Made by a program: the position numbers and the translations under genes
Shown: piece by piece, positions 14,833-32,889 of the stretch
Layout of the letters: each line of letters starts with the position of its first letter
How positions within the stretch are numbered: position 1 is the first letter of the stretch
The notes under the pieces: model-generated
The model's database searches: none
Told to the model about the DNA's origin: nothing
Seen by the model: only the letters and a program-made list of their open reading frames with translations
Origin: Oculina patagonica
Taxonomy: Eukaryota
Direction: 5' to 3'
Length of the DNA: 64,000 nucleotides
NCBI RefSeq assembly: GCF_052425735.1
Contig: NC_135763.1
Location: 16,740,001-16,804,000 of the forward strand

Positions 14833-16183
14833 GTGAAAATCGTTGAAAAGCTTGAGTTTTTCAATGGCTCTCGACCCTTTCGATTTCGACTGGTTTTCCT
14901 CGATTAGTCCGCTGACCGCTAAGCAATGTTGTGCAGACCAAACATTCTCGTCCCCAGAGCCGCTTGTCCCACTGAAGAATAAAAGCGCAAGCACAAGGAT
15001 TTTGCTCAAATGCTTGCCATGTTCACATTACTCCAGGAACAGCGCAACAGCTTATGCAGTATAATGTGAACACACTGCTATTCCAGTCGCAGAAGAAGAA
15101 ATATATTAAATAACAAACAAATCACTAAATAAATGCAAAAAAGCACAACCAGTATTTCTTTTTTGATGTAAAAATCTGCACTATTTTATTCAACACTTCT
15201 AAAGAACCCTGCTGTAATTAAAAATGGCTTAGTTACATTTTTTTGCATGCCTAACCCCTTGGATGCATTTTTCTTCGGCGAACTGACCTCACTACATTCA
15301 AACTCTACCTTTACAATTACAACAACAGTGTTTAATTCTCTGCATCTGAAACAATTTAACTTTTACTACCTCTCGTTCAAAAATAATTTGGTTAAAACTA
15401 CTGCCACGTATACACTTATAGTCCTATAATCCTATAACGTTTCTTTATTGTTACAATTGCGGTAACATTTATTAGATAAATTACTCCAGACCCAAAATGT
15501 ACTTTATCCATACCAAAAATAGAGTAAATTAAGTATTCTACAATCTGATAAGAGAATTTTGCCAATAAAGTTTCTCCTAAAAATAGACGATTGTATTTAC
15601 TGCAATATTCTTAATCTTTTTAAACCGTTTATTGAAACACTAAATATCGTATCAACAACAAAATTCTCAGTTTCTGATTGGCTTTCCACACGACTATCAC
15701 GTGACTGAAGTGGATCACGTGAGTGTGACAACCATTTGTAATAGAGTCCTTGTTAATTTCAATTCTTACAAATCATTTCGTTGATATATAAATATAAAGC
15801 CTAGAAGTTCCCGAAGGAGAGAATGAAGGTTGCAGGTATCGTAGATATGCCAGTTGACGATACTAAAAAGGAAAAAGAAAACAACATCTCAAAAGATTAT
15901 CAAGTTTGCGAAGTTTACACATTGCTTGGCATGTAAAACTTTATACTTTTTCCAAGGTAATTATTTCACGACACAAAACTACTCAGTAAATTGTGTAAGA
16001 TATATTTAAAACAAACGAAATCAACAAGCAGAAGAATCATTATCGGCCGACTGGGAATGTCTAAAAATATTGCCAAAAAAACATAGATGATTTAAAACTA
16101 AATTCCCCCCAAAATAATCATAGCAAATGTATTACGCATGTTAAGAGAATTTTGATCCAGACCTTGAAGCGTTAAACGTCACT

Positions 16184-19100
16184 CTATTGATCCTTCTGTT
16201 GCTTTTTGTGCTGAGCCAGGGCTGCTAGTCGCTTGTCTCTCAAATTCCTTCGTTCATTCAGTTGATCCAAAGGCATGCTTTGATTCAACGCCTTTTCAAG
16301 CTCGTCCAGTGTTTCACCAGCGAGGGCCCGAGGTCCCCCCTGCTCCTTGCACACATCTACAATGTTTGCTCCGTATCGCTCACAATAGTCTCTGATTCCT
16401 AAAAGGTGAACACTGCACTTCAGTCACACTCAAATCTGTCATTGCTTCTGCTAATAAATCAATGCATTTCTACGGAGGTTCCACCACAGAAATACTAATA
16501 ATGTTTTCTGGAACAATTTGTACTTCGGTAGCATTTAATTTTTTACAAAACCAGCGAAAATCATTCACCTTATATCTCGTTTACACCACCAATTAAGTAA
16601 ACATTTCACTTAGTTAAATGACGTTTCTCAATCTGAACTTGAGATATGAGAAATACTCTTGTTCCTTGGCCATTCAATATGAGAAGAAATAATTTTTTTT
16701 CGCATTTTATAACCGTCACTTCTGAAGATGTATGCTGTAGCATACAAAACGTCAAGTAAATTCTAGTTTTTTTTTTCAAACCATGCGTAGTCTATGTGTT
16801 ACAAGATTGTGCGCGATACATACCATTTGCATTCAGCTGCATGGTTTCAAATGGTCCTATCAGCGCGTAACGTAATCCCAGACCTTCTGTCATAGCGGTT
16901 TCTACATCTTCAGGAGAGCACACACCATCCTACAGAAAATACATGTAAGTTTATACATTTGCAGAGGGTCCTGAAAGGGGGGGGGGGGAATCCCATTTCC
17001 CAGCCTATCGTTTTCCCAAATCCCAGTCCCAGTTCCATAGTTTTTTGTTTGTGATTCCCAGTCCCAGTGACCTTAATCCTATTTTCCCAGTGAAAATTTG
17101 CCCAAATCCTAATTCCCATCTTACCCCTTCAAGCCCCTTTTTTGCACTAAAGTGTTGCCAGACTTAGCTTTTTGTTAGACAATTCCACACCGTCTTTTGC
17201 CTCCCGCTAAGTGATTTATAAGAGCACAATGTACAATAGATTAAGCCTCTATCGTGACAGACACTTCTTTGCCCCAGAAGCCTGCATGCCTCTTCATTTT
17301 TACATACCTTTTAACTAGCCATTAGCTACAGGGCCAGTGAATTTTTATTGAATCACGTGAAGTTAATTCAATTGTCTGGTACACTCCCCGTAAATGAAAA
17401 GAACTACCGAGCATACAGCTCTATAGAACCCCTTTTCCTTCCATACTTAATTTAACATTGCTAAAAAATTTTTTAAATACCCACTGAAGGAACACAGTCA
17501 TGTACACCATGCTGCAGTCGTTATAAAATATACCGCTAATCTAATTCCTTTTGTATTTTCAGTTGTTCAATTTTAACTATTACATGAACTGAAAGTGTTG
17601 GTGGAGGGATAATGTTATTTATACAATGATCTATACAGTAACTATGGTTGGCAACACGTTTTAGTGCAGAACAAAGGATGTCTATTCCTTATGAGGAACC
17701 ACAAAAGTGGTTTTAGTTAGAAGACTCGAGAAAACGTTTTACACATTATTGATTAAGACGTGGTATGCACAAGCATGGGCTACTGTGAAAATAAACTAGG
17801 TTTCCGTTAGTGCACCGTGCTTGCTTTGCTTTTCGTTGCTTTGTAATGCGTTTCAGGCTTTCCATTGCATTTTGCTTTGCATTGCATTGTATAACACCGC
17901 ATTTTGCTTTGATTTCTCTTTCCTTTGCCCTGCCTTGCCTTCCTTTGCCTTTTCTTGCGTTGTCTTCTCTTGCCTTGTGTTGCATTTCAGGCTTTCCTTT
18001 GCTTTGTTTTTTGCTTTGCTTTGCTTGTGTTGCATTGCTTTGCACTGTACTGCAATGCTTTGCTTTGTCTTTTGTTGCTTCGCCTTGCTTTCCTTCTCTT
18101 TGCTTTGTATCGCCTGCTTTGCTTCGCTTTGTTTTGCTTTGCTCTGCTTGGCTTTGCTTTCCTTCTATGCTTCGCTTTGTATCAGGGGCCCACCCTAAAA
18201 ATGAACCCCCTCCCCCCAATCTCTTTATACATACCTCAACAAGTCTCCAGGCCTCCATAATCACAGCATACTGCAAACGGTTTAAAATGAATCCATTCAC
18301 TTCCTTTTTGGTGACAACAGGTGACTGTCCAATTTCCTTCATTAAAGTTACTGTCTGTTCTAGAACTTTACTGTCTGTCCAGGGTGCAGGAACAACCTCT
18401 ACTAGAGGTACATAGTATGGAGGATTTATCTGAGAAAAGAGACATATTTATCCATCAGTTAAAGCCATCCTTACAATAAAAAAACCTTAATAATGAGACA
18501 GATGACCCTTTTTTCAAAAGGACTCATCGACCTTTCAAGAAAAAATATCTATTTGCAGCCTTGCTTTATGCCTATGATACTAGAAAATGTTGTCTGACAT
18601 TATAGGCACGCAATGTGTGCAGAGGGCAAAGTGCATGCAGAAGGCATGGAATTGTATGTATTTGCACGAATTGCAGGCCTATGTTACTGGATCATTTACT
18701 ACATCTTTGCACCAGTTTTATTTGTGGAATGTGGCAAAGAAATGGTTTAAAAAGTTGATACTCACTGGATGGGCCACAATACACTGACTGCGATGCTTTA
18801 AAGTTGAAGTAAACTTTGACGGCACAATGCAAGATGTTGAACTAGCTAGTATAGTCTCGTTGGAAGTGACAACCTTGTCCAGATTTTCAAACACTTTTTT
18901 CTTTAATTCAAGGTTTTCTGGAGTGCATTCCTGATATACAAAAACAATATAATGACATGAATAAAGCAAATTATTCACAAAAACAACATTAGCACAATCC
19001 TTGCCTAGCTTATCCATGTTAGTTACATACAAACGTATTTTATGTACTTTCTACATTTTAAATATTAGCTTTTTTTAAACATTATAATGAGCAATTGAAA

Positions 19101-21900
19101 AATTTATATTATTATTATTAAAATTATTATAATTATTATTATTATAAATTATTTTTTATTTATTTATTACTACTACTATTGTGGTTATTAATTTTTAGAA
19201 CTGGTTGAAATCAATAATCATTTCAGTAAATGACTCAGGCATTGAAGTAAAGAAAAAGAGTATGAACTTTCACAAACTCAATGATTAAATATATGAAGTT
19301 TTAGAAAATTATCACATTTTTATTTGTGGCACATCAAATCAACAGATTGAACGAGTTTGATGATTTAATTCTATATTCTTGCCACCAGTCCACTCAATAA
19401 TGCACCTATATTGAATGGAGAAATTAGCTGCTGATGATAATCTTCAAGTCTATCCTACCTGGACATACATAGCACCATCTACTGCCTTCTCCAGATCATC
19501 ATAGCTTGCAACCAACTTAAAAGCTGCTTGAGCTGTCATGCCCGGACTGCGCATCAACCCTTTAGACTCCATGTCACGCAACTGAGTCTCAATGCTTGTC
19601 AATGCATTAGTTAACTGACTAGCAACCGTGTCATACAATGCCACATTGAAACCAGCACTGGAGAATATCTAGAAAGTTAAATAGAGAAATTTACCAATAG
19701 TCAAATAGCTATGATGGTTAAAGGGAAGCCTCAAGCCATGTGGCCCATAGTGCAGGAGCTTATCCCGGTTTCTATAGCAATAAGTGGCTAGGGATATTTC
19801 TACCCCTGAATGGGATGTTAGTCCATGACAGGGTACCCCCTGGAAGCATTATGTCGCTGGTAACCATTTAATATACACCAGCTGGGTGGAGAGAGGCACT
19901 GTGTAAGAAACGTGTCTTGCCCTAGCCTGTGAGCAGGCTTCCGATCTTCTTAGCTTCCAAGCGGGCCTTCTCCCTTTCTCCCTTCCCCCTCCTTCTCTTC
20001 GTGCTTTCTTTATTTTTTTTTGCCCCATCCTTGACTAGAGAGCCTGTTCACAGACTAGTCTTGCCCAAGAACACAACACTGTGACCCCGGCCAGGGCTTG
20101 ACCTGGACTGCTTGATCTTGAGTCTGGCGCACTACGTTATTAAATGCAACCGAAATTATGATGGTTGATATCCTTAAAAACAAACTTTTCAGTGATCTTA
20201 CTGAATTAAAGTCCTTCTGTGTTTTTGGTTATGATTTAACTAAAATGTTTGTTCAGAAGTTCAAATGTTTCCTTTCAGTACAACCTGTGATATTCAGGTG
20301 CAAACTATCACTCACTGATTGGCAATTTACTTGAGCAAATCTCAAATAAGCAAGTAAAAGTTCCACTTGAGTTTTGTCAAGTTCCGGTTTTTAATTTATT
20401 GAGGTGTAAACTGAATAATAAGTGCCACACTTGTCACAGAGACAAAAGAAATAATTGTCCTATGGTAGACTTAAGTACTCCTTGTAAACAGATTGCAAGA
20501 AATATTAGTGACAATTTGAGTTTGCATTATTAGAAAAGAGACTGATTGATATACTTACAACTGACCAACATCTTCCTATTAACCCACTGGTGGAAAAATT
20601 AAAAAAAAAATACGAGAAATTTAGGTGTATAAACCCTTTTTTTTAAGGATATATTACTGTTCTAAGTAGTTATTCTTTTGAAAGAGGAATAAACAGTATA
20701 ATGTGATGTGCATTTTATTAAAATTCACGGCACTCTGCATGTCATGGTTCTGCGTTTTTCATGATTTTCAAAAAATCACAAAATTAAAGACCCCTGAAAA
20801 CACATTTTGTAACATTTTGTTTGTCTTTTTAACGTTTATAATGTAGTTTTTGGCCAAATTGCAAAAATTAAGTCTCATGAAATATGCCCGTTCCATTTTC
20901 GCGTAAATAAGTAACAATAAGGTAGTAGTACAATATGGTTGCTTTAAAGGAAAAAATAGTTAGGTTAATTTATATTGTCAATTTTGAGACTGCTGATGCT
21001 TATAGTGGTTTATCATTTCACCTTTCTCTATTCGTTTCTAAGCAACTTTTAGTTAAATGTGCTACTTAACCTTTTTTTATGATTGACAAGGTCACATGAC
21101 CACATGGCATGCAAAGAACCTATTAGGTGTGTTTTCACTGTTGGGATACTGACAAACAGGTACAAGTATAGAGGGGCCTGAAAGGGGTAAAATGGGAACT
21201 TGGATTTGGGCAAATTTTTACTCAGGGAGAATGGATTTGGGTAGCTGGGACAGGGAATTGCAAACAAATAAACAATAAATTAATTGGGACTGGGATTTGG
21301 AAAATTGGGAAAACAATAGGCTGGGAAATGGGATTTGGGCAAAATTTGCACCAGGAAATTAAATGAGATTCTATGTTCCCCCTCCCCCTTCTGAGGACCC
21401 TCTATCTGTAAAGTGGGGCTAGTGTACACATATCTTGAGTCAGCACCAAGAAAGTTGAAAGCTTGTATACAATGAACTGATGTCAAGGGTGGTTTCAAAC
21501 TTAGGTTGACACAAAATTGGTAGACTAAAAGCAACCAGAGACCTATGAAGTATTAAGTTTGCAAGGCTTGCTTCCCTGACACAAGTAAACATCATAAAAT
21601 ATCTTGGGGCAAGTCAACCAGTTTTGCTTTTTATTGCAGGGCTGAAAGTTCTTATCATTTGTTTAAAATCTACATGTACACAGTTAAAGTCAAAATGTAC
21701 CTAAACTCTGAGGGTTCCATTTTGACTGATAAAAGGTGATTTGTTTTGTAGTGCTGCAGTGGTTGTGCCTCAGTTGATGTAGCCTTGTCTGAATCCTCCT
21801 TGTTTGGACCAAGAAGTGATATATACTTTTTTCTTTTTTAAAAAAACACCTACCTGCCAATTATTGTGATTTTTCCTTTACTGCTTGGTGAAGATGCCAT
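16184..21900 (-). CDS. CRYL1: Lambda-crystallin homolog / L-gulonate 3-dehydrogenase (~321 aa)
   Basis: Seven GT-AG exons with consistent phases: 21900-21854, 20586-20559, 19668-19459, 18930-18766, 18429-18235, 16929-16824, 16398-16184. Protein [38 protein letters not shown]...[13 protein letters not shown]...ILASSTSC...[16 protein letters not shown]...[10 protein letters not shown]...[20 protein letters not shown]...[18 protein letters not shown]. Confidence 0.95.
17817..18180. repeat. Degenerate (CTTTG)n pentanucleotide microsatellite in a CRYL1 intron
   Basis: Runs of ctttg/ccttg/cattg; source of several low-complexity ORFs. Confidence 0.85.
19715..20135 (-). mobile_element. SINE-like repeat interrupted by a 135-bp TAG..CTA element (19923-20057, 9-bp TSD gtcttgccc)
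   Basis: gtcttgccc at 19914-19922 and 20058-20066 flanks tagcctgtgagcagg...cctgttcacagacta; the host reads as a tRNA-type head on the minus strand; related fragments near 32500, 45290 and 52610. Confidence 0.65.
21169..21404. mobile_element. MITE; a related copy in opposite orientation at ~16963-17140
   Basis: tagaggggcctgaaagggg ... ccccttctgaggaccctcta; shared internal ctgggaaatgggatt motifs. Confidence 0.65.
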
Positions 21901-23359
21901 TGCTGTTAAAAGAGTATTAGGCTTTTTTTCATGCAGTAAATGAATAAAATTAACATAACTAAAGTATAGTCAGAGTGCCAATAACTAAAATCTACCAATC
22001 ATATTGCTCCATTGCCAGTCCAATATTTTCTTTAGAGTATTTGACCGGGTATTGTCCCAAATGATTCCATACATGAAAATTCATACATATCAAGTAACTT
22101 GGCCGTTGAATGTAATAAGTTTTAAACCCTCTGATACTTTTTTGTAGGTTTGTAGATCAACACATGTTAGGGAATTCAATTCTACCCATTAGTCCAGCCA
22201 GACACTCCTTAACGGTATTTTCTTGGTCAGAATCCTGTTTGGGATAATATCGTCTTTTATCCTTCCAACTTTTTGCTAATATCTATGAAAATCTTTTTCA
22301 GTTGCGTAATAAATCTCTCATTAACGGACAAGCTTGCTTGTACTGGGAGAGTATAAGCCTTCGACTCGATTTTCTGAATAGACTTCTGGGGGTTGATATT
22401 AGCCCCAGTACAGCCCTCACACTAATGGTATTGGTTAAAATCATATTTATGTAAGAACATAAAATAATGTTATGTGGCGTAAAAGTGATCAAAATTGAAA
22501 AATTTGCTCTCGCCTCTAGCAAAACTTTATAAGCCTCCTCTGGAAAATTTACCTATGCATATTACCAGAAGCATATCACCTAGGTGATATGCTTCTGATA
22601 TTACACGTACATTTATCACACATATATACTGCACGACTTCTACAATGTAAATTAAGTCATGTGATTACAGGCTCTCGTGACATGTACTCCGACTGTGCTT
22701 TAATTAATTGTGCCATCTTCAAATAATAGCGACAGGATCTTCTTTTGGATCTGTTAGATAAATGATGGGTTTAAAGCTATCATACAGGATATTTATTTTC
22801 CTTCTATGGATCATAAAAAATTTAAGCTCCAATAACTTAATTTAAGCAAAAACGGCTAGGCGGGAACAAAGTTATTTGCTACATTTAGTATAGTTTTGGA
22901 GACAGGTAGCTGGTTTCACCGAGGCTCAAAAAATATTATCTTCGCTTGCAAAAGATTATATTCCATTTTGTTTTCCAAAATAAAAAATCCCCTTGATATA
23001 AAGCGAATTAGTATGCACAAACCTGGACTTGTTTACGACCTTGGGACGCGCAAAAACTTCCCGAGATGTTCTAAGAAAAGAAAGTGACAACAAATTACAG
23101 CATCGCTTTTTCTGTGCTGAGCCCGCGTGACTTGCTGGGCAGAAGCGTTTATTCTTCTAGGGTAGGGTGCGTGATATAAACGTTCAAGAACACTAAATCA
23201 AAGCTTTGATTAAGAATTAAACCTAAACTATCGACAAAAATACAGATCGAATATTTTTAGACACTTATGTAATATTTTAGACTAATTAAATTCTAGAAAC
23301 AATAGAAGATGTTTCAAACGCACTAGTAGGACTGTGTCCACCCCAGAGAAGTTTGATGT

Positions 23360-23512
23360 GCTCTGATTGGCCAACAGTGAAAATAACCAAGCAGGGTGGG
23401 TCGGGGATTCCCCGCGGGAAAAGTCCCGGGAACGAACGTTGATAAGAGAATATTCGTTGTTCGCGGTTTCGTTTCATCAAGAAGATTTGGGAGAGTATTT
23501 CCTGCGTAAAAG
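23360..23512 (+). promoter_or_regulatory. Promoter and non-coding first exon of the A20-like gene: inverted CCAAT box and two NF-kB sites
   Basis: ATTGG 23366-23370; GGGGATTCCCC 23403-23413; GGGAAAAGTCCCC 23416-23428; donor AG|gtgagc at 23513; acceptor tttcag ending 23641. Confidence 0.7.
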
Positions 23513-23812
23513 GTGAGCCTGTTTACAAGCTAATTAGCATGAGTTTTGAAAAGGGTACGGAGTTCATCATAAGGGTTCTTTTGGTTGATTATGTCAGCTA
23601 TAATTTCCCTAACTTTAACACAAGTTCACTTCCTGTTTCAGACGCATTTTAATACGTGATCGGTTTCTCTTTTTCAAAAGTTAACTCTGTTGAAGTCGGA
23701 GGAATGTTGGTTAAAGTTGGAATCGTCTCGATCCATTAAAAGAGCGAGCATTCTTAACAGAAACTCTGGTTGTTAGCAACGGATTCAATCGTTGTTCGAT
23801 CTACATTCAACA

Positions 23813-26800
23813 ATGGCTTCATTTCAGCCGCCTAGTCATCTTTTTGAGCGAAATATTTCCTTGAATGATTTGGACTCAGCTTTGGACGTGAGAGAGATCG
23901 TGCGCAGAGATGTCGTGGTCCCAGAAGACGTTACGAAACACCGCTATCTCGAGTCTTCAACCAAGTATTCATTTGTGCTGCCATCGTTTCAAGATTTCCC
24001 TATGGAGTTCCGCAAATTCGTGTACAGCTTTCTTGTTGATGGCCACATTCTCAGAGAACTGGAAGCAGCGAGGAGGCTGAATTGGTGTACGTCTTTGGGC
24101 CGTATGGTTACGGTGAATACTTTGGGCGATGGAAATTGCCTGATGCACGCAGCTTCGATTGGAATGTGGGCAGTAAATGATAGATATCAGATTCTGAGAA
24201 AAACTGTCTACGAAGCATTAGTGGAGGACGTGGAAGGTACAAGTAAGTTAAGATCTTAGGGGATATGGGGGAGGAGGGGGTTAGTGGCCTTAAAATGTGC
24301 AATATAAGTTTACCCTCCCCCTGTAATAACTGTGATTAAAAGGGAAAGAGGAAATGATGATTAGTGGTTCAGAATCTAAAGATAGTTAAATTACAGTTTC
24401 AGCATCTCCTTTGTTGGTAGTGGAGGTGTAATAGTTTCAGCATGGCTAGTTACATAAGGAAGTAAAAGAGTTCTGTTTTGTTTAACATTCAAAACAGAAT
24501 ATTGTTGTGTTAAGTCTCTATGGGAACTGTAAAGTGGCCATGGTTGACTGAAAACAGAAAAAATTGAATTCATGCACTTGATTTCTAAATCAAATTAAAA
24601 CAAACGTTATTTGTTTTGAAAAAAAGGGTATGTTTATTACAAAAATAGCAGTCGAGTCTTCACATCTGGCCAAATATGTTACATGCCTGTATAAAACTGA
24701 CAAACATTAGTATGTGCATGGAGAAGTTATTAAGAACCCTGATAATCAGTTAGACGAATATTCATATCTTCTCAGTTTTGAGCTTGTTTAATTACATATT
24801 TTCATCTAACCATGAAAAAATTCTAAAATTCTATGTAAATGTCATTTACATAGAATTTTTACAGTTATTGGTAGTCGCGTCTTTGCTAAAAGTCCTTTGC
24901 CATTACTTTTTTCTTGTTTTTAGGATTTTACCATAGCCGCTGGAAATGTGAAGAAGAGCGTCAAATCTCAAATCAGATTGGTGGATACAAACGGACAGAA
25001 GAGCAGTGGAATCATGAATGGGAAGAAGTTATTAGACACATTTCTCAGACAGAATTCCCATTTGGTCGAAATGGTGCCCAGTTCGGAAGCCTTGAAGAAA
25101 TCCACATATTTGTCCTTGCAAACATTCTGCGTCGTACCATCATAGTGCTGTCAGATGAGACTCTGAGAGGACCTTATGGCGATTCGTACTCACCAATTAA
25201 CTTTGGAGGTATTTATTTACCTCTGCTCTGGGACTCTGTTGACTGCGTAAAAAGTCCGTTGGTAATTGGCTATGCAAATGGGCATTTTACTGCAGTTGTC
25301 AATATTGAAGATGGTAAATTGGACCTGGGCAATGAAAATAACCCAAGTGGCTCAAATAATTGCATACATGCAGTGCCATTAGTAAAATATGATGGGATGC
25401 CATTACCAGTTCACTTCCTTTACGATCAAGAAGTACCATTTGCAAGTGACCGTCTCCGCCAATACTTAGATTGTGCAAAGGTTCCCTTTTCCAGCAATCC
25501 AGGAGAAGCCAGACAAACAGTTCTTGTTGCAAAATTGCATTTTTCTGAGCAACCCCGCTGTATGAAAGAACTCATTGAAGGGTACTTCACAAAGGCCATG
25601 GAGGAACATGAGCGTGTATTGAGACACAGTCAGCTTCATCCTCAGTTGCAACCGGGCACCAGACAGCCAGCTCTACAGATTGTTCCATGTCAAACTCCAG
25701 GCTGCAGTTTTTATGGATGTACCGAAACTGGTAACCGTTGCTCTCAGTGCCTTAACGAGTTTCTAAGGACCTTGGGAACTGCTTGTGAACCAGGTCAAAA
25801 TGTCTCCTCAGGACAGATCCAGCAACAAGTTGCAGTGACAACACAGCAAGCCCCAAATGCCAGTGCATGGCAACAAACTGCAACAACAACAACACAAGCA
25901 CCAGCGAACACCAGTGTTGCATCTTCCATGACCCTCCCTGTAGCAAGTTCTGCTAAATGCCGTACTGCAGGATGCAAGTATGGAGCTATGCCTGACAGAG
26001 GTGGTCTTTGTGAGAGATGCTTTGAAGCTGAAAGAAGTGCCGAAGAAATGGCTGCAAGCATGAATCACATGAGTTTGGCATCAGCAAAGCATTGTTCAAA
26101 CAGAGTGAATGGCTGTGAGTTCTTTGGTTTGCCCGAACATCACAACTTGTGTTCCAGATGCTACAGAACCTTCTGTCTTCGCATGGAAAACACTTTGGGG
26201 GTGCAATCTCCAACTGGATTACCACCAAGAAGTCCCGCGCCATTGACACCTCCAAACCGATGCCAGAATCCAGACTGCCCCTCTCCAGGTGTCCCTGCCT
26301 TGTATGGTATGTGTGTGCAGTGCTACACTGGGTGTATACATAATTTCATAACCTCTGAAGGAAGATCAGTTGGAAGTGCAGCGCAAACTACTCCACATCT
26401 GCCATCACCACCGATGGACGTCAGGAGAAAGAACATGTTACCTACAGGTGGCAGGACAAAAGGCGTCTTGTGTGCTTCTCCTGGTTGCTGCAATGAAGGG
26501 ATCTTTCAGTTATCTGACCTCTGTGCAGAGTGCCATGCAAGGAAGTCTGGTCCATCGCCACAGATGAGGAACACTCCAGTCTCGGCAGCAGGTGCGGTGA
26601 GTTTCCCAGTGGCTGCACCCCCTCCGAGCTCCATGCCAACATCGGCTGCTTCGACTCATCAACTGACATCAGCACTTACAGGTGCCATCGGGTACTACTG
26701 TTCCAACCCAATATGCAAGAACCCAATAAGAAAGGATGGAAGAGGCTTATGTCAAAGGTGTGAAAGTGCCTTTTTGACACATGGTAATCCTGCAGCTAGT

Positions 26801-29800
26801 TTGCAACAAGCAAGAACCAGACCAATTGGTCTGACAACCACAGCATCAAGCATGCCACCAAGACAAAACACACCAGCTTACACAAGCAGCGCCACCTCGC
26901 AAACGTATACTGTTCCTGGGGCCTCAATAGGACTTCCTCATCAAGTTGGGGCACCACAAGCGCCACATGCTGAAGCTAACACTGGGATGTGTGCCATGGG
27001 CTGTGGACAGCGTGCAGTGCAGGAAGGTGGTTTGTGTCAAGCATGCTATACTGCAGCTTTTCAGCTAGAATTGAACAGACAAACTGTCCCCCAGCCATCC
27101 AGACAACAAGGAGCAATGGCATCTGGAGTTACAAGCAATCAGGTATGCATTCAGCTGATGTGTATATCCGGCCTAGTTATTAGATAGATGGGTTTTCATG
27201 TCAGTAGTAACTTGCATTAATTTGCTGTGGTTTTGCATTAAATTTTACGCTTAGTGTTTGGCTAAAAAAAACTGGCGCCACTTTTTCAACCAATCAAAAA
27301 TGAAACCAGAACCAATCCTGACCCAAAAGCCTTAATGCACTGTTGCCCTTACAAAAATTATTAAATAAATACAAAACGTAATTAAAATAAAGAGTACTGG
27401 CTGCCTGGAATAACCAATGGGCAAGTAGAGCCAGGCAGTTCAGTCTGGTTCACTGGATTGATTGCATCCTAAGTAACTGCCCAGAATGATTTTTTGGTTT
27501 AAGTTTTATGAAATGCAACTAATTAAGTCTCAATTACAGGTTTTCAGCCTGTTCCCCCCCCCCCTCCCCCAGCAATCTGTGAGTTTCCATTAATTTTCAA
27601 CTACAGTGTACAATTATCACACGGAGATGTACATGTAGTAGAGGCATTCACAGTGCAAGTATGAATGTGATGTACAAAATAATTATCACGAAAAAATGTC
27701 TCACCCAAGACACTAAACAAGGATCCATAGTCAAGATTACTGAAGACTGACTATATATGGGCAAGCCTTTCTCTTATAAATCTGTAGGCCTGACCTCCCT
27801 TAAAACTGTGATCTAATTGCTTTCTTTTCTTTGTTTCATTTCAAAGGTTGAACAAAGAAATACTGTTGAAACAAGCTCTGGTAGAAACCTGCAACAGACA
27901 GAGGCGACAGCAGCTAAGAAGAAATTACAACTGCTGCCATGTACTACAACAGCGTGTTTGAATTTTGGCACCCCAGGACAAAATGGCCTATGTGACGATT
28001 GTTATCGGAAGAAGGACATCAGGCAGCAAGGTGCCCCATCAATTGCTGGAGCTAACAAACGACAGGTCTCAAGCATCAGTGGCAGCATGCACAGTGCTCA
28101 AACTACATCACAGAATCATCACTTCAGCAACAGCTCTGCAGAGCCAGCATATTATGGGCTACCGGGTCCTGTACAAGTGTCCCAGACTCAAAGCCCGTCA
28201 TATGAAGCAGGCACGGCAAATTCAGGAAATGATGCCTTCCATGATCAGAAGTGTCGCGGCACCAACTGTACCCTGTTTGGAACACCCGAAACAAATGGCT
28301 ACTGTTCTCGGTGCTTTTTGGAGAGCACAATACCTCTGTCATACCCACATTCAATTCCAGGTAAGGTTTCTTGAGTATCAATATAATTCACTGTGTTTGT
28401 TCGTTTGTTTTTCATCAGTTTTCCATGAACAAAAATACATGTAGGTTTTCTGACATTGAATGCAGTCACTTAAACAAGTCAGAGGCAATTGTAGTAGGGG
28501 GAGGGGGGAGCAATGCACTGAGCTCAGTGAGCTGTGTAGTCTCCCTCGCAGCCGTTCTTAGTGTCGTCACGCAAAATTCCTCCCCACTAACGGCTGCTCA
28601 CATTCGAACAACATTCCTTTCCCTTGTTTCTTATGTGACCAACACAGCACGGGAGATCGTAATCAACATGTTTTCCCGCGAATTCGGTTGTTGCAGAGAA
28701 GAACATTCGAGTACCGGAAAAAGCGGCCCCAGTCAACACGTGAACCACACGGCACCGAGACAGGATGTGAGCGCCAGCGTGAATCCACTACATTGAATTG
28801 GAGAGAACTAACAAATACACGGAGTACTCCTTTTTGCGACGTTAGTCTGCGGGATCGATCCCATGATTTCGCACGCACGCAAAGCTATATAATTTTTCCG
28901 CCCTCTGCGAACCCTTGGGATCAAAAGGGCGCGAGGCGACTCTAGCTAGCAACCGTTCATGCGGCGAATTGTCTGCCGTGTCTGCAAGCGCCCCCAAAAA
29001 ATATCGAGATGACACATGGCCGTAGACCGCGAGGCCGGGGAGACCACAAGCGTTATGAAGACCCAGTAGAAGCGAGCGGACGGGTAACGCGGAAGAGGAC
29101 ACGAAAGCCGAAAAGAGACAACACAAAAGCTCTTCAAGGCCAAGGGGGAAAGCGAGAACCCAAAAAAACACGAATGCGATGTGATGGGGGTACGGTTCGA
29201 GAAAACGAGGAGGGAAGGTGGAAAGGAATGGGAAGTGAGAGCCGTTAGGGGGAGGAGGGACGACACTAAGAACGGCTGCGAGGGAGACTATGAGCTGTGT
29301 AGCTTCGTGGAAGAAATGAGTTTGATTAAAAATAGTACCACGTTGAGCACTACATTTCCCATACAATGTATCATTTCAGTCATTATAATACCAGCCTGCA
29401 CCAGAAACAAAGCTACATCAGACGCCCAATTGCGAATCCTCCTGGCATTTCCAAGATACCTGTAAATTACATGTAAAATTGACATGATTGGAATGCAAAG
29501 TGACTTTAAGTTAATTATTTTTATTTTTAATTTAGTACTTTGTTTTACTTAGTTCTGGAAAGCACTTTAAAACCAGCAAATAAATTACACCTGAATTTAT
29601 TGTCAAGAACTGTCTTATAGTTTTGACTTGTATTACCCGTAATCAAGTTGTCATTCTCAATCTTTTGGCAGATTTTCCACCTCAAGTTTCACCATCACCT
29701 GCAGCTGCACCTCACACAACAGAAAAGTGCAGAGTTACTGGCTGTGCAAATTTTGCCGCACCAGAGAGGCATGGTCACTGCCAACAGTGCTTCACAAGGT

Positions 29801-29877
29801 TTTACCCTGAAGTGGTCCATCGCGAAATAGTTGTACAAAGACAAATGTCTGAACTGGATGAAAGTATTCCTTATTAG
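23813..29877 (+). CDS. TNFAIP3: A20/TNFAIP3-like OTU deubiquitinase with 10 A20-type zinc fingers (~1120 aa)
   Basis: Exons 23813-24236 (or -24242), 24924-27142, 27847-28360, 29672-29877 in consistent phase. OTU motifs RLNWC, TLGDGNCLMHAAS (catalytic Cys), SLEEIHIFVLANILRR, GGIYLPL, GYANGHF (catalytic His); repeated Cx4Cx11Cx2C-like fingers. Multiple fingers favour A20 over OTUD7. Confidence 0.9.
28537..29290. mobile_element. Non-autonomous DNA transposon: perfect 32-bp TIR (TAG..CTA), 9-bp TSD
   Basis: TIR tagtctccctcgcagccgttcttagtgtcgtc; TSD tgagctgtg at 28528-28536 and 29291-29299. Confidence 0.9.
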
Positions 29878-31996: not shown

Positions 31997-32889
31997 TAAG
32001 TGAACTGTCCATAATGGTAAGGTGTCCATAAGGTTGACAGTACTATTCATATCTTATGGATTCTGCTGAAATGTATCACCAGGTGTATTTTAACTTGGAC
32101 ATCATGAAAACCATGCAAATAGAATTTGTGTTGTGAGCAACACGACTGGAATTTGCACTAGTCTACTGTTGCATCGTGTTGTTACAAAAAATATCGATAC
32201 CCCATATCCAAGTTTCCTCTTTGCAAATTACACAATTGTTAGCCTCCTATGCATATACTTATTGGGCTCATCAACAAATTATAATTGCACAAGCTTAAAG
32301 ATTTTGTGTTGGTTTTAAAAAAATTAATGAACATAATGCACTACAGTAGTTAATTGCAATATTATATCAAAATAGTTGGCTAAAATAATAATATTTATTA
32401 ATATATACCACACAAGTGAATAGTGCTTTTCGCACGCATTGATTGGTTAACTCAGCGGTGATTAGCAAAGCCCGCTAGTTATTCAACTTGTGTAAGGTAG
32501 GTAAAGTCTGCTTCGAGCCAGTGGCCCTACAGGCCGGAGCTCCCGTTTCGGGGCCCCCCCGGCCCCCCGGGGGGGGGCCCCCCCCCCGCCCCTGTGGTAT
32601 AATTATACTAAAACAATAATTGTCGGTAAATGTGGTGGATATTTACCTTGATGCTCAGTAAATATCCACCACTATTCCCCTCCACTTCAGTGAATACTTG
32701 TTAAATATAGTTTGTCAGAAAAACTTCTGGCACAGGAAGCACACAAAATCTGTCATAAAAAGGGCACAATTACCGGGTAAACGGCACAAAAGTTATCACA
32801 CCAAACCAAACAAAGCACAAAACACATATGATTTATCTTTATCAAAGGCTTTATTACATGTTGGACACTTAAAGTACAGATGAATTTAA

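Follow-up and report, generated by a model that had tools for sequence, protein, structure and literature searches.

Do corals place their A20 gene under the control of NF-κB, and if they do, how old is that link? The question is raised by a 64,000-nucleotide stretch of the Oculina patagonica genome (NCBI RefSeq assembly GCF_052425735.1, contig NC_135763.1, positions 16,740,001 to 16,804,000), referred to here as the window, with coordinates counted from its first nucleotide. An initial annotation, made from the letters alone, had pointed to tandem NF-κB sites in the promoter of an A20-like gene and had suggested that the regulatory wiring, and not just the gene, may predate the cnidarian-bilaterian split. 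We evaluated in turn the gene, the position of the sites relative to its transcripts, their conservation across anthozoans, and the factor expected to bind them.

The gene downstream of the κB pair is an ortholog of TNFAIP3, as its provisional name implied. It encodes 1,120 amino acids with an OTU domain and eight A20-type zinc fingers, all of which satisfy the strict pattern C-x2-4-C-x11-C-x2-C; human A20 has seven A20-type fingers. Pfam profiles matched the OTU domain across exons 2 and 3 as well as the zf-A20 fingers, and the exon 3 product is 100% identical to a 1,120-residue NCBI protein of O. patagonica (P0001). The catalytic-cysteine motif GDGNC lies at residue 105 and is invariant in 10 anthozoans. 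The top named noncnidarian protein matches were all vertebrate TNFAIP3 (E values of 1e-40 to 1e-50), closeness to TNFAIP3 rather than to OTUD7 or other OTU proteins being judged by best matches. The summed exon lengths amount to exactly 1,120 codons, and the reading frame closes. Alternative splice donors 6 nt apart (24236 and 24242) were seen in different RNA runs, which fits isoforms X1 and X2.

Table 1. Promoter elements and exon-intron structure of the O. patagonica A20 gene (window coordinates)
Feature	Coordinates	Strand	Details
CCAAT box	23366-23370	-	ATTGG on the + strand, in an NF-Y-like context (CTGATTGGCC); 32 bp ahead of site 1
κB site 1	23403-23413		GGGGATTCCCC, a perfect 11-bp palindrome
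κB-like site 2 and the invariant GG after it	23416-23429		GGGAAAAGTCCC at 23416-23427 (12 bp)
Exon 1, noncoding	~23450-23512	+	Observed from 23471; ~23450 inferred from the homologous Montipora transcript end
Intron 1, within the 5' UTR	23513-23680	+	GT..AG, 168 nt; RNA joint 23507>23676, cut shifted by 5
Exon 2	23681-24236	+	Rest of the 5' UTR, ATG at 23813, N-terminal part of the OTU domain with GDGNC
Intron 2	24237 (or 24243, alternative donor)-24923	+	Spliced RNA contigs
Exon 3	24924-27142	+	Remaining OTU domain and five A20-type zinc fingers
Intron 3	27143-27846	+	Spliced RNA contigs
Exon 4	27847-28360	+	Two A20-type zinc fingers
Exon 5	29672-29877	+	Last A20-type zinc finger and stop codon; loose RNA end after 28360 matches 29672 onward

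RNA evidence bears out the candidate noncoding first exon. In public RNA runs, spliced contigs join 23512 to 23681, and since the ATG is found only in exon 2, exon 1 is noncoding. The longest Oculina RNA contig (X3) extends back to 23471, 37 nt upstream of the exon 1/2 joint, and the loose end of the X1 RNA contig matches 23491 to 23507 within exon 1. In Montipora, a transcript contig (L011) starts 26 nt past site 2 of the corresponding genomic locus (L009) and uses the same homologous donor; its start corresponds to ~23450 in Oculina. A poly(A) raw-read run (X23) contributed a single read. The contigs start 26 to 44 nt after site 2, in agreement with the earlier placement of the sites just upstream of exon 1, and the κB pair precedes the first transcribed bases seen by ~25 to 70 bp, contig ends being distinct from mapped start sites, so that the sites might touch the transcript start. 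Both contigs put the two sites at approximately -20 to -70, which is core or proximal promoter.

A further element, AGTTTCGTTTCA (23466 to 23477), coincides with the 5' end of the transcript contig or lies close to it; it is nearly invariant in stony corals and includes, on the minus strand, the IRF-core-like word AANNGAAA. It may serve as an initiator or as a partner site of the IRF type.

From 23400 to 23430 the sequence runs GTC-GGGGATTCCCC-GC-GGGAAAAGTCCC-GGG, the dinucleotide GC at 23414 to 23415 forming the spacer between site 1 and site 2 and the two site centers lying ~13 bp apart. Site 1 is built of two 5-bp GGGGA half-sites flanking a central A/T. It matches the κB consensus GGGRNWYYCC in two registers and on both strands, and it also conforms to the 11-bp p50/p52 form GGGRN-N-NYCCC. 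Site 2 departs from the 10-bp consensus GGGRNWYYCC and conforms only to the 12-bp pattern GGGRN4YCCC. Its reverse strand, GGGACTTTTCCC, is the Ig-κB word GGGACTTTCC with one extra T, so that its two good GGGRN half-sites stand 2 bp apart, versus 1 bp in the Ig-κB word.

The tandem sites that the initial annotation had placed at 23403 to 23428 are thus both present, but the 13-letter word that it gave, GGGAAAAGTCCCC, ends wrongly, 23428 being G and not C. Its description of the two as a tandem pair likewise holds only in part: site 1 is canonical and deeply kept, whereas site 2 is noncanonical, and sea anemones and the octocoral lack it or have it in degenerate form. The CCAAT box that it had noted upstream of the κB sites is there, on the minus strand. 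Two other readings of this segment were rejected. A STAT/GAS reading of TCCCGGGAA (23424 to 23432) fails in that the word is not kept among corals, and a mechanical minus-strand open reading frame overlapping the κB block (23286 to 23480) is not conserved and has indels in its flanks.

How readily might such words arise by chance? Within the window, κB-consensus matches numbered 7 versus 3.0 expected, a weak excess, and 4 of the 7 are the site 1 palindrome itself. The 11-mer GGGGATTCCCC has 277 copies in the 529-Mb genome (~1 per 1.9 Mb, or 5e-7 per bp) and is 4.3-fold commoner than the reversed control 11-mer (64 copies); an exact copy in one 2.5-kb interval is expected approximately once per 800 tries per lineage. 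The 25-mer κB block as a whole is unique in the 529-Mb genome with 2 mismatches allowed, which excludes an origin from a repeat or transposon. A chance match is excluded by the position-specific conservation described below.

Several other occurrences of κB words were recorded during these scans. Genome-wide, GGGGATTCCCC is strongly clustered, for example at C1:25.21-25.35 Mb, C3:16.77-17.01 Mb, and C4:2.11-2.13 Mb. Two copies at C3:16.8 Mb have the arrangement TTCTCAGAA-aca-GGGGATTCCCC-TTATAAATA, in which a STAT-type word, the κB palindrome, and a TATA box succeed one another. The succession of GGGGATTCCCC and, within 10 to 70 bp, TTTCGTTTCA occurs only twice in the genome, at A20 and at a TMEM121-like promoter (C3:16808828). 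The TMEM121-like promoters resemble that of A20 in that the same 11-mer adjoins the core promoter, in one copy with TTTCGTTTCA, but differ from it in that their palindrome is paired with STAT-type sites and a TATA box. Elsewhere in the window, a second κB-consensus word, GGGGGAATCCC, lies at 16984 to 16994 in an intron of a dehydrogenase gene, beside the exon at 16804 to 16929, and a short low-complexity patch of G and C runs (32549 to 32592), which could be an assembly artifact or a G/C tract, gave spurious matches to the κB pattern.

Orthologous A20 loci were collected by protein look-up and one metagenome scan, the Montipora foliosa and Nematostella loci being reached via protein cluster members. 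Fourteen anthozoan loci were compared: those of 10 stony corals (62 to 85% exon 3 identity, including Desmophyllum and a Montipora-like member of the complex coral clade), the sea anemones Nematostella and Actinostola, a hexacoral (L025) about as distant from corals as from anemones, and the octocoral Dendronephthya. In every anthozoan locus with a visible upstream gene, a 3-hydroxyacyl-CoA dehydrogenase gene stands head-to-head with A20, and this shared neighbor indicates that the same locus is being compared in each species.

The dehydrogenase-A20 arrangement was seen in Oculina (window 16164 to 19668, minus strand) and, at loci L002, L005, L006, L008, and L010, in Desmophyllum, Actinostola, Nematostella, and Dendronephthya. 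A ribosomal protein L24e gene lies downstream of A20 in Desmophyllum and Dendronephthya, extending the microsynteny across anthozoans. In the Desmophyllum pertusum locus (L005, 8070 to 8210), residues 24 to 70 of exon 2 are out of frame relative to other anthozoans, after which the frame returns. Such a pattern suggests either a pair of erroneous indels in the assembly or a genuine frameshift, and it would explain the short annotated protein of 586 amino acids.

Site 1 is letter-identical in 12 of the 14 loci (nine stony corals, both sea anemones, and L025), and the other two carry κB-like variants of it, GGGTTTTCCCC in the Montipora-like coral and the consensus variant GGGATTTCCCC in Dendronephthya. 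Every one of the 10 stony-coral loci, including the Montipora-like one, has the identical site 2, and 9 of them share the invariant block GTCGGGGATTCCCCG[C/T]GGGAAAAGTCCCGG. When seven corals were aligned over 1,220 bp (-800 to +420), the longest invariant run was GGGAAAAGTCCCGG, at 14 bp, followed by the exon 1 splice donor (AAAAG|GT) and then by the TTCCCC half of site 1. The flanks in the same alignment are far less constant relative to Oculina: 41 to 72% identity over the 680 bp upstream and 51 to 87% over intron 1. Outside the stony corals, TCGGGGATTCCCC is present in Nematostella, Actinostola, and L025; the local sequences are GTCGGGGATTCCCCC in Nematostella, ATCGGGGATTCCCC in Actinostola, and TTCGGGGATTCCCC-GC-GGGAAAGTACC in L025, where the reverse strand of site 2, GGTACTTTCC, is one mismatch from the classical Ig-κB 10-mer. 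Site 2 was not recognizable in Nematostella and Actinostola and was absent or degenerate in the octocoral. In both anemones, the scan from the dehydrogenase gene to the A20 coding start found no κB-consensus site other than site 1.

The setting of site 1 is kept along with its letters. In 7 of the 10 species tabulated it lies 109 to 128 nt ahead of a splice donor, for which RNA support comes only from Oculina and Montipora, the other species having a donor-like sequence. Eight of the 10 tabulated loci, both anemones among them, have an ATTGG/CCAAT box ahead of site 1 at a distance of 37 to 85 bp (37 to 58 bp in seven of the eight), and L025 also has one. The Dendronephthya gigantea promoter (L010, 7283 to 7325) has, after GGGATTTCCCC, the half-κB word GGGAATTTTT and then a perfect AP-1 site, TGAGTCA.

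The alignment of promoters across anthozoans that had been proposed as a check therefore finds site 1 kept across Hexacorallia, with a consensus variant in the octocoral, and site 2 kept across stony corals. Relative to the flanks, this pattern points to purifying selection on the κB sites. We conclude that the link between site 1 and A20 dates to at least the ancestor of Hexacorallia and probably to that of Anthozoa, and that site 2 was gained or sharpened along the branch to stony corals, with an altered form in the L025 lineage. The link between gene and site is older than the tandem arrangement, and site 1 is the oldest element in the A20 promoter.

The metagenome scan returned distant contigs in addition to anthozoan-like loci. 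An A20-like contig with 35% identity (L029) showed no κB-like word over the 2.7 kb that precede the homologous exon, and in two others (L030 and L031) the match is limited to a short piece of exon. In positions 1 to 270 of L031 (Ga0209679_1035761), the palindromic κB-consensus word GGGATATCCC occurs three times (41, 123, and 229) and the related GGGATATTCC once (204), in repeats of ~83 to 105 bp immediately ahead of a short exon of OTU-like sequence (GDGNCLLHAVS…).

What protein would read site 1? A scan of the genome with Rel-homology-domain profiles found one strong NF-κB gene and a fragment copy. The recognition loop of the NF-κB gene, RGFRFRYPCEGPSHGGLPG, equals that of human p52 except for a noncontact P/G difference and is one residue off that of p50. 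It includes the His that, in p50/p52 structures, extends the half-site to 5 bp. Matches of the Rel homology domain in the PDB were strongest to p52 (3e-32) and p50 (5e-30), with c-Rel (2e-21) and p65 (1e-18) behind. The Oculina genome thus encodes a p50/p52-type NF-κB, in line with the p50-like protein that the initial annotation had ascribed to cnidarians. Protein-binding microarrays have revealed that cnidarian NF-κB has a p50/p52-like, highly conserved specificity (PMC5700166). The fragment copy, at C7:20844313-20844441 (L014), is an isolated partial recognition-loop exon (…GGPSHSGLLGQYSGKGKKSYP…) that lacks the RFRY start and is probably a pseudogenized fragment.

The closest known parallel is the mammalian TNFAIP3 gene itself, which has a noncoding first exon and κB sites at approximately -66 and -54, ~12 to 13 bp center to center, as in the coral. 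The two promoters belong to orthologous genes, have two close κB-type words in the first ~100 bp upstream of the start, and are TATA-poor with boxes for general factors upstream. They differ in that the general-factor box is CCAAT in the coral and, as reported, Sp1 in human, in that coral site 2 is a 12-mer with a noncanonical half-site spacing, and in the expected binder, a predicted homodimer of the single p50/p52-like protein in the coral versus p50:RelA in mammals. Furthermore, the site sequences cannot be aligned across phyla, so that homology of the sites themselves cannot be shown. The human A20 minimal promoter (-95/+9) acts through two NF-κB sites (PMC4104738), and mouse A20 has an A/T-centric κB site at -39 (PMC4167904).

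Two further comparisons place site 1 among known κB elements. The κB element of MHC class I (H-2) is the classical 11-bp site preferred by p50/p52 homodimers. Its sequence, GGGGATTCCCC (bioRxiv 10.1101/2022.05.03.490500), is letter for letter that of site 1, with the same two 5-bp half-sites and central A/T, but it belongs to another gene, organism, and promoter context; the identity reflects conserved NF-κB specificity and not descent of the site. Predicted cnidarian NF-κB targets (BCL3, TRAF-like, and heat-induced genes in Aiptasia and Nematostella) likewise have computed κB words within ~500 bp of their starts. Those predictions are motif counts in single genomes, whereas the A20 site has position-specific conservation across 14 anthozoan lineages.

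No other part of the promoter is as strongly conserved as the κB block, which has a CCAAT/NF-Y-type box ahead of it. We consider it likely that the 25-bp block is a functional proximal-promoter module that is bound by NF-κB and makes coral A20 inducible, both binding and induction being inferred. Under this model, activation of the pathway by TLR-, TNFR-, or STING-type signals via IKK would send the single p50/p52-like NF-κB to the nucleus as a homodimer. The homodimer would bind site 1, whose 11-bp geometry is optimal for p50-type proteins, and in stony corals it would also occupy the adjacent site 2; binding would then raise A20 transcription. By analogy with vertebrates, A20, an OTU deubiquitinase with ubiquitin-binding zinc fingers, would damp the upstream ubiquitin-dependent signaling and so close a negative-feedback loop. 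A published RNA-seq data set from Nematostella with NF-κB knockdown bears on the same pathway (PMC8713801).

A conserved block could be real and yet be read by something other than NF-κB: EBF/COE, an NFAT/NFAT5-type Rel factor on GGAAAAGTCC (TonE-like), or another cnidarian factor. The EBF reading draws on the junction of site 1 and site 2, CCCCGCGGGA, which matches the EBF core TCCCNNGGGA (CCCC-NN-GGGA) at 9 of 10 positions, and on the fact that the only letters varying among corals are those at the two EBF "NN" positions (GC, GT, or TC). However, the outer half-sites (GGG at 23403 to 23405 and GTCCCGG at 23423 to 23429), for which an EBF site has no need, are conserved as well. The EBF word is also absent from Nematostella, Actinostola, and Dendronephthya, where site 1 persists, there being no GGGA after site 1 in the anemones, and what is deeply kept in the anemones, L025, and the octocoral is a complete κB palindrome. 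Site 2 taken alone fits GGAAANNYNY, which is the TonE core minus its first T, as well as failing the 10-bp κB consensus, and an NFAT5-like reading is possible for that site; against it stand the L025 form of site 2, so close to the Ig-κB 10-mer, and the Rel-homology-domain scan, which returned no NFAT-like match in the genome, although short exons can escape such a scan. Taken together, a reader other than NF-κB seems unlikely to us.

NF-κB might, alternatively, bind the element and leave it basal or repressive, through p50-like homodimers with or without BCL3, in which case A20 would not be induced and cnidarians would have no feedback loop. In mammals, p52:Bcl3 acts as a repressor at A/T-centric sites, and late after induction the proximal A20 site is one of them (PMC4167904). 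The coral site 1 is itself A/T-centric, NF-κB of cnidarians is of the p50/p52 class, and because such dimers can repress at sites of this type, the direction of regulation is not given by sequence. We nonetheless judge this outcome quite improbable: truncated Aiptasia NF-κB activates reporters on its own (PMC5700166), and the Exaiptasia TNFAIP3 homolog is upregulated at 3, 6, and 12 h after Vibrio challenge (PMC7654579) and rises along with NF-κB in starved Aiptasia. A third explanation would be that the module serves the divergent 3-hydroxyacyl-CoA dehydrogenase gene, which is head-to-head with A20 in all anthozoan loci with a visible upstream gene, or that it is a chance or neutral match without function, the κB excess within the window alone being weak. 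The first detectable dehydrogenase coding exon (19453 to 19668, minus strand) is 3.7 kb off, however, compared with ~25 to 45 bp for A20 exon 1, and a letter-perfect site 1 in 12 of 14 loci between such divergent flanks excludes neutrality, which leaves this explanation hardly credible.

Inducible control of A20 by NF-κB through the 25-bp block is therefore the reading that we prefer. The conservation of site 1 from stony corals to sea anemones suggests that a self-limiting inflammation circuit may be very old. Whether it is older than Cnidaria is a more tentative matter. To our minds it is possible, if somewhat short of an even chance, that the NF-κB-to-A20 link is homologous between Cnidaria and vertebrates, in which case the cnidarian-bilaterian ancestor, more than 600 million years ago, would have had a promoter-proximal κB site upstream of a noncoding exon 1.

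A κB element in the promoter of an orthologous A20 gene is of a kind already known; its evolutionary depth is unusual. A single transcription factor binding site is usually lost or replaced in the course of tens of millions of years; the 11-bp site 1 of A20 has held its place in the promoter throughout Hexacorallia, and the octocoral has a consensus variant of it. Cleves et al. (2020) reportedly compiled Aiptasia genes with at least three κB sites, and TNFAIP3 is not named in one supplement of a 2023 preprint that uses that list. Our literature searches found no paper linking the cnidarian A20/TNFAIP3 promoter with κB sites, the mentions being of expression only, no functional data on cnidarian A20, and nothing relevant on amphioxus A20 ("bbtA20"). 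A 2026 review of holozoan NF-κB, in which A20, TNFAIP3, and feedback go unmentioned, calls for the identification of targets (PMC13042239).

On the strength of these promoter comparisons, A20 is a concrete, high-confidence candidate for a direct target of cnidarian NF-κB. The age of NF-κB negative feedback thereby becomes testable in Nematostella, for which shRNA, CRISPR, an NF-κB antibody, and agonists exist. If the homology with vertebrates is true, few retained connections of a transcription factor to a particular target gene would be older, and the link would count among the founding negative-feedback motifs in the innate immunity of animals. For coral biology, the finding nominates A20 as a readout, and possibly a brake, of the NF-κB activity that is tied to symbiosis, bleaching, and disease.
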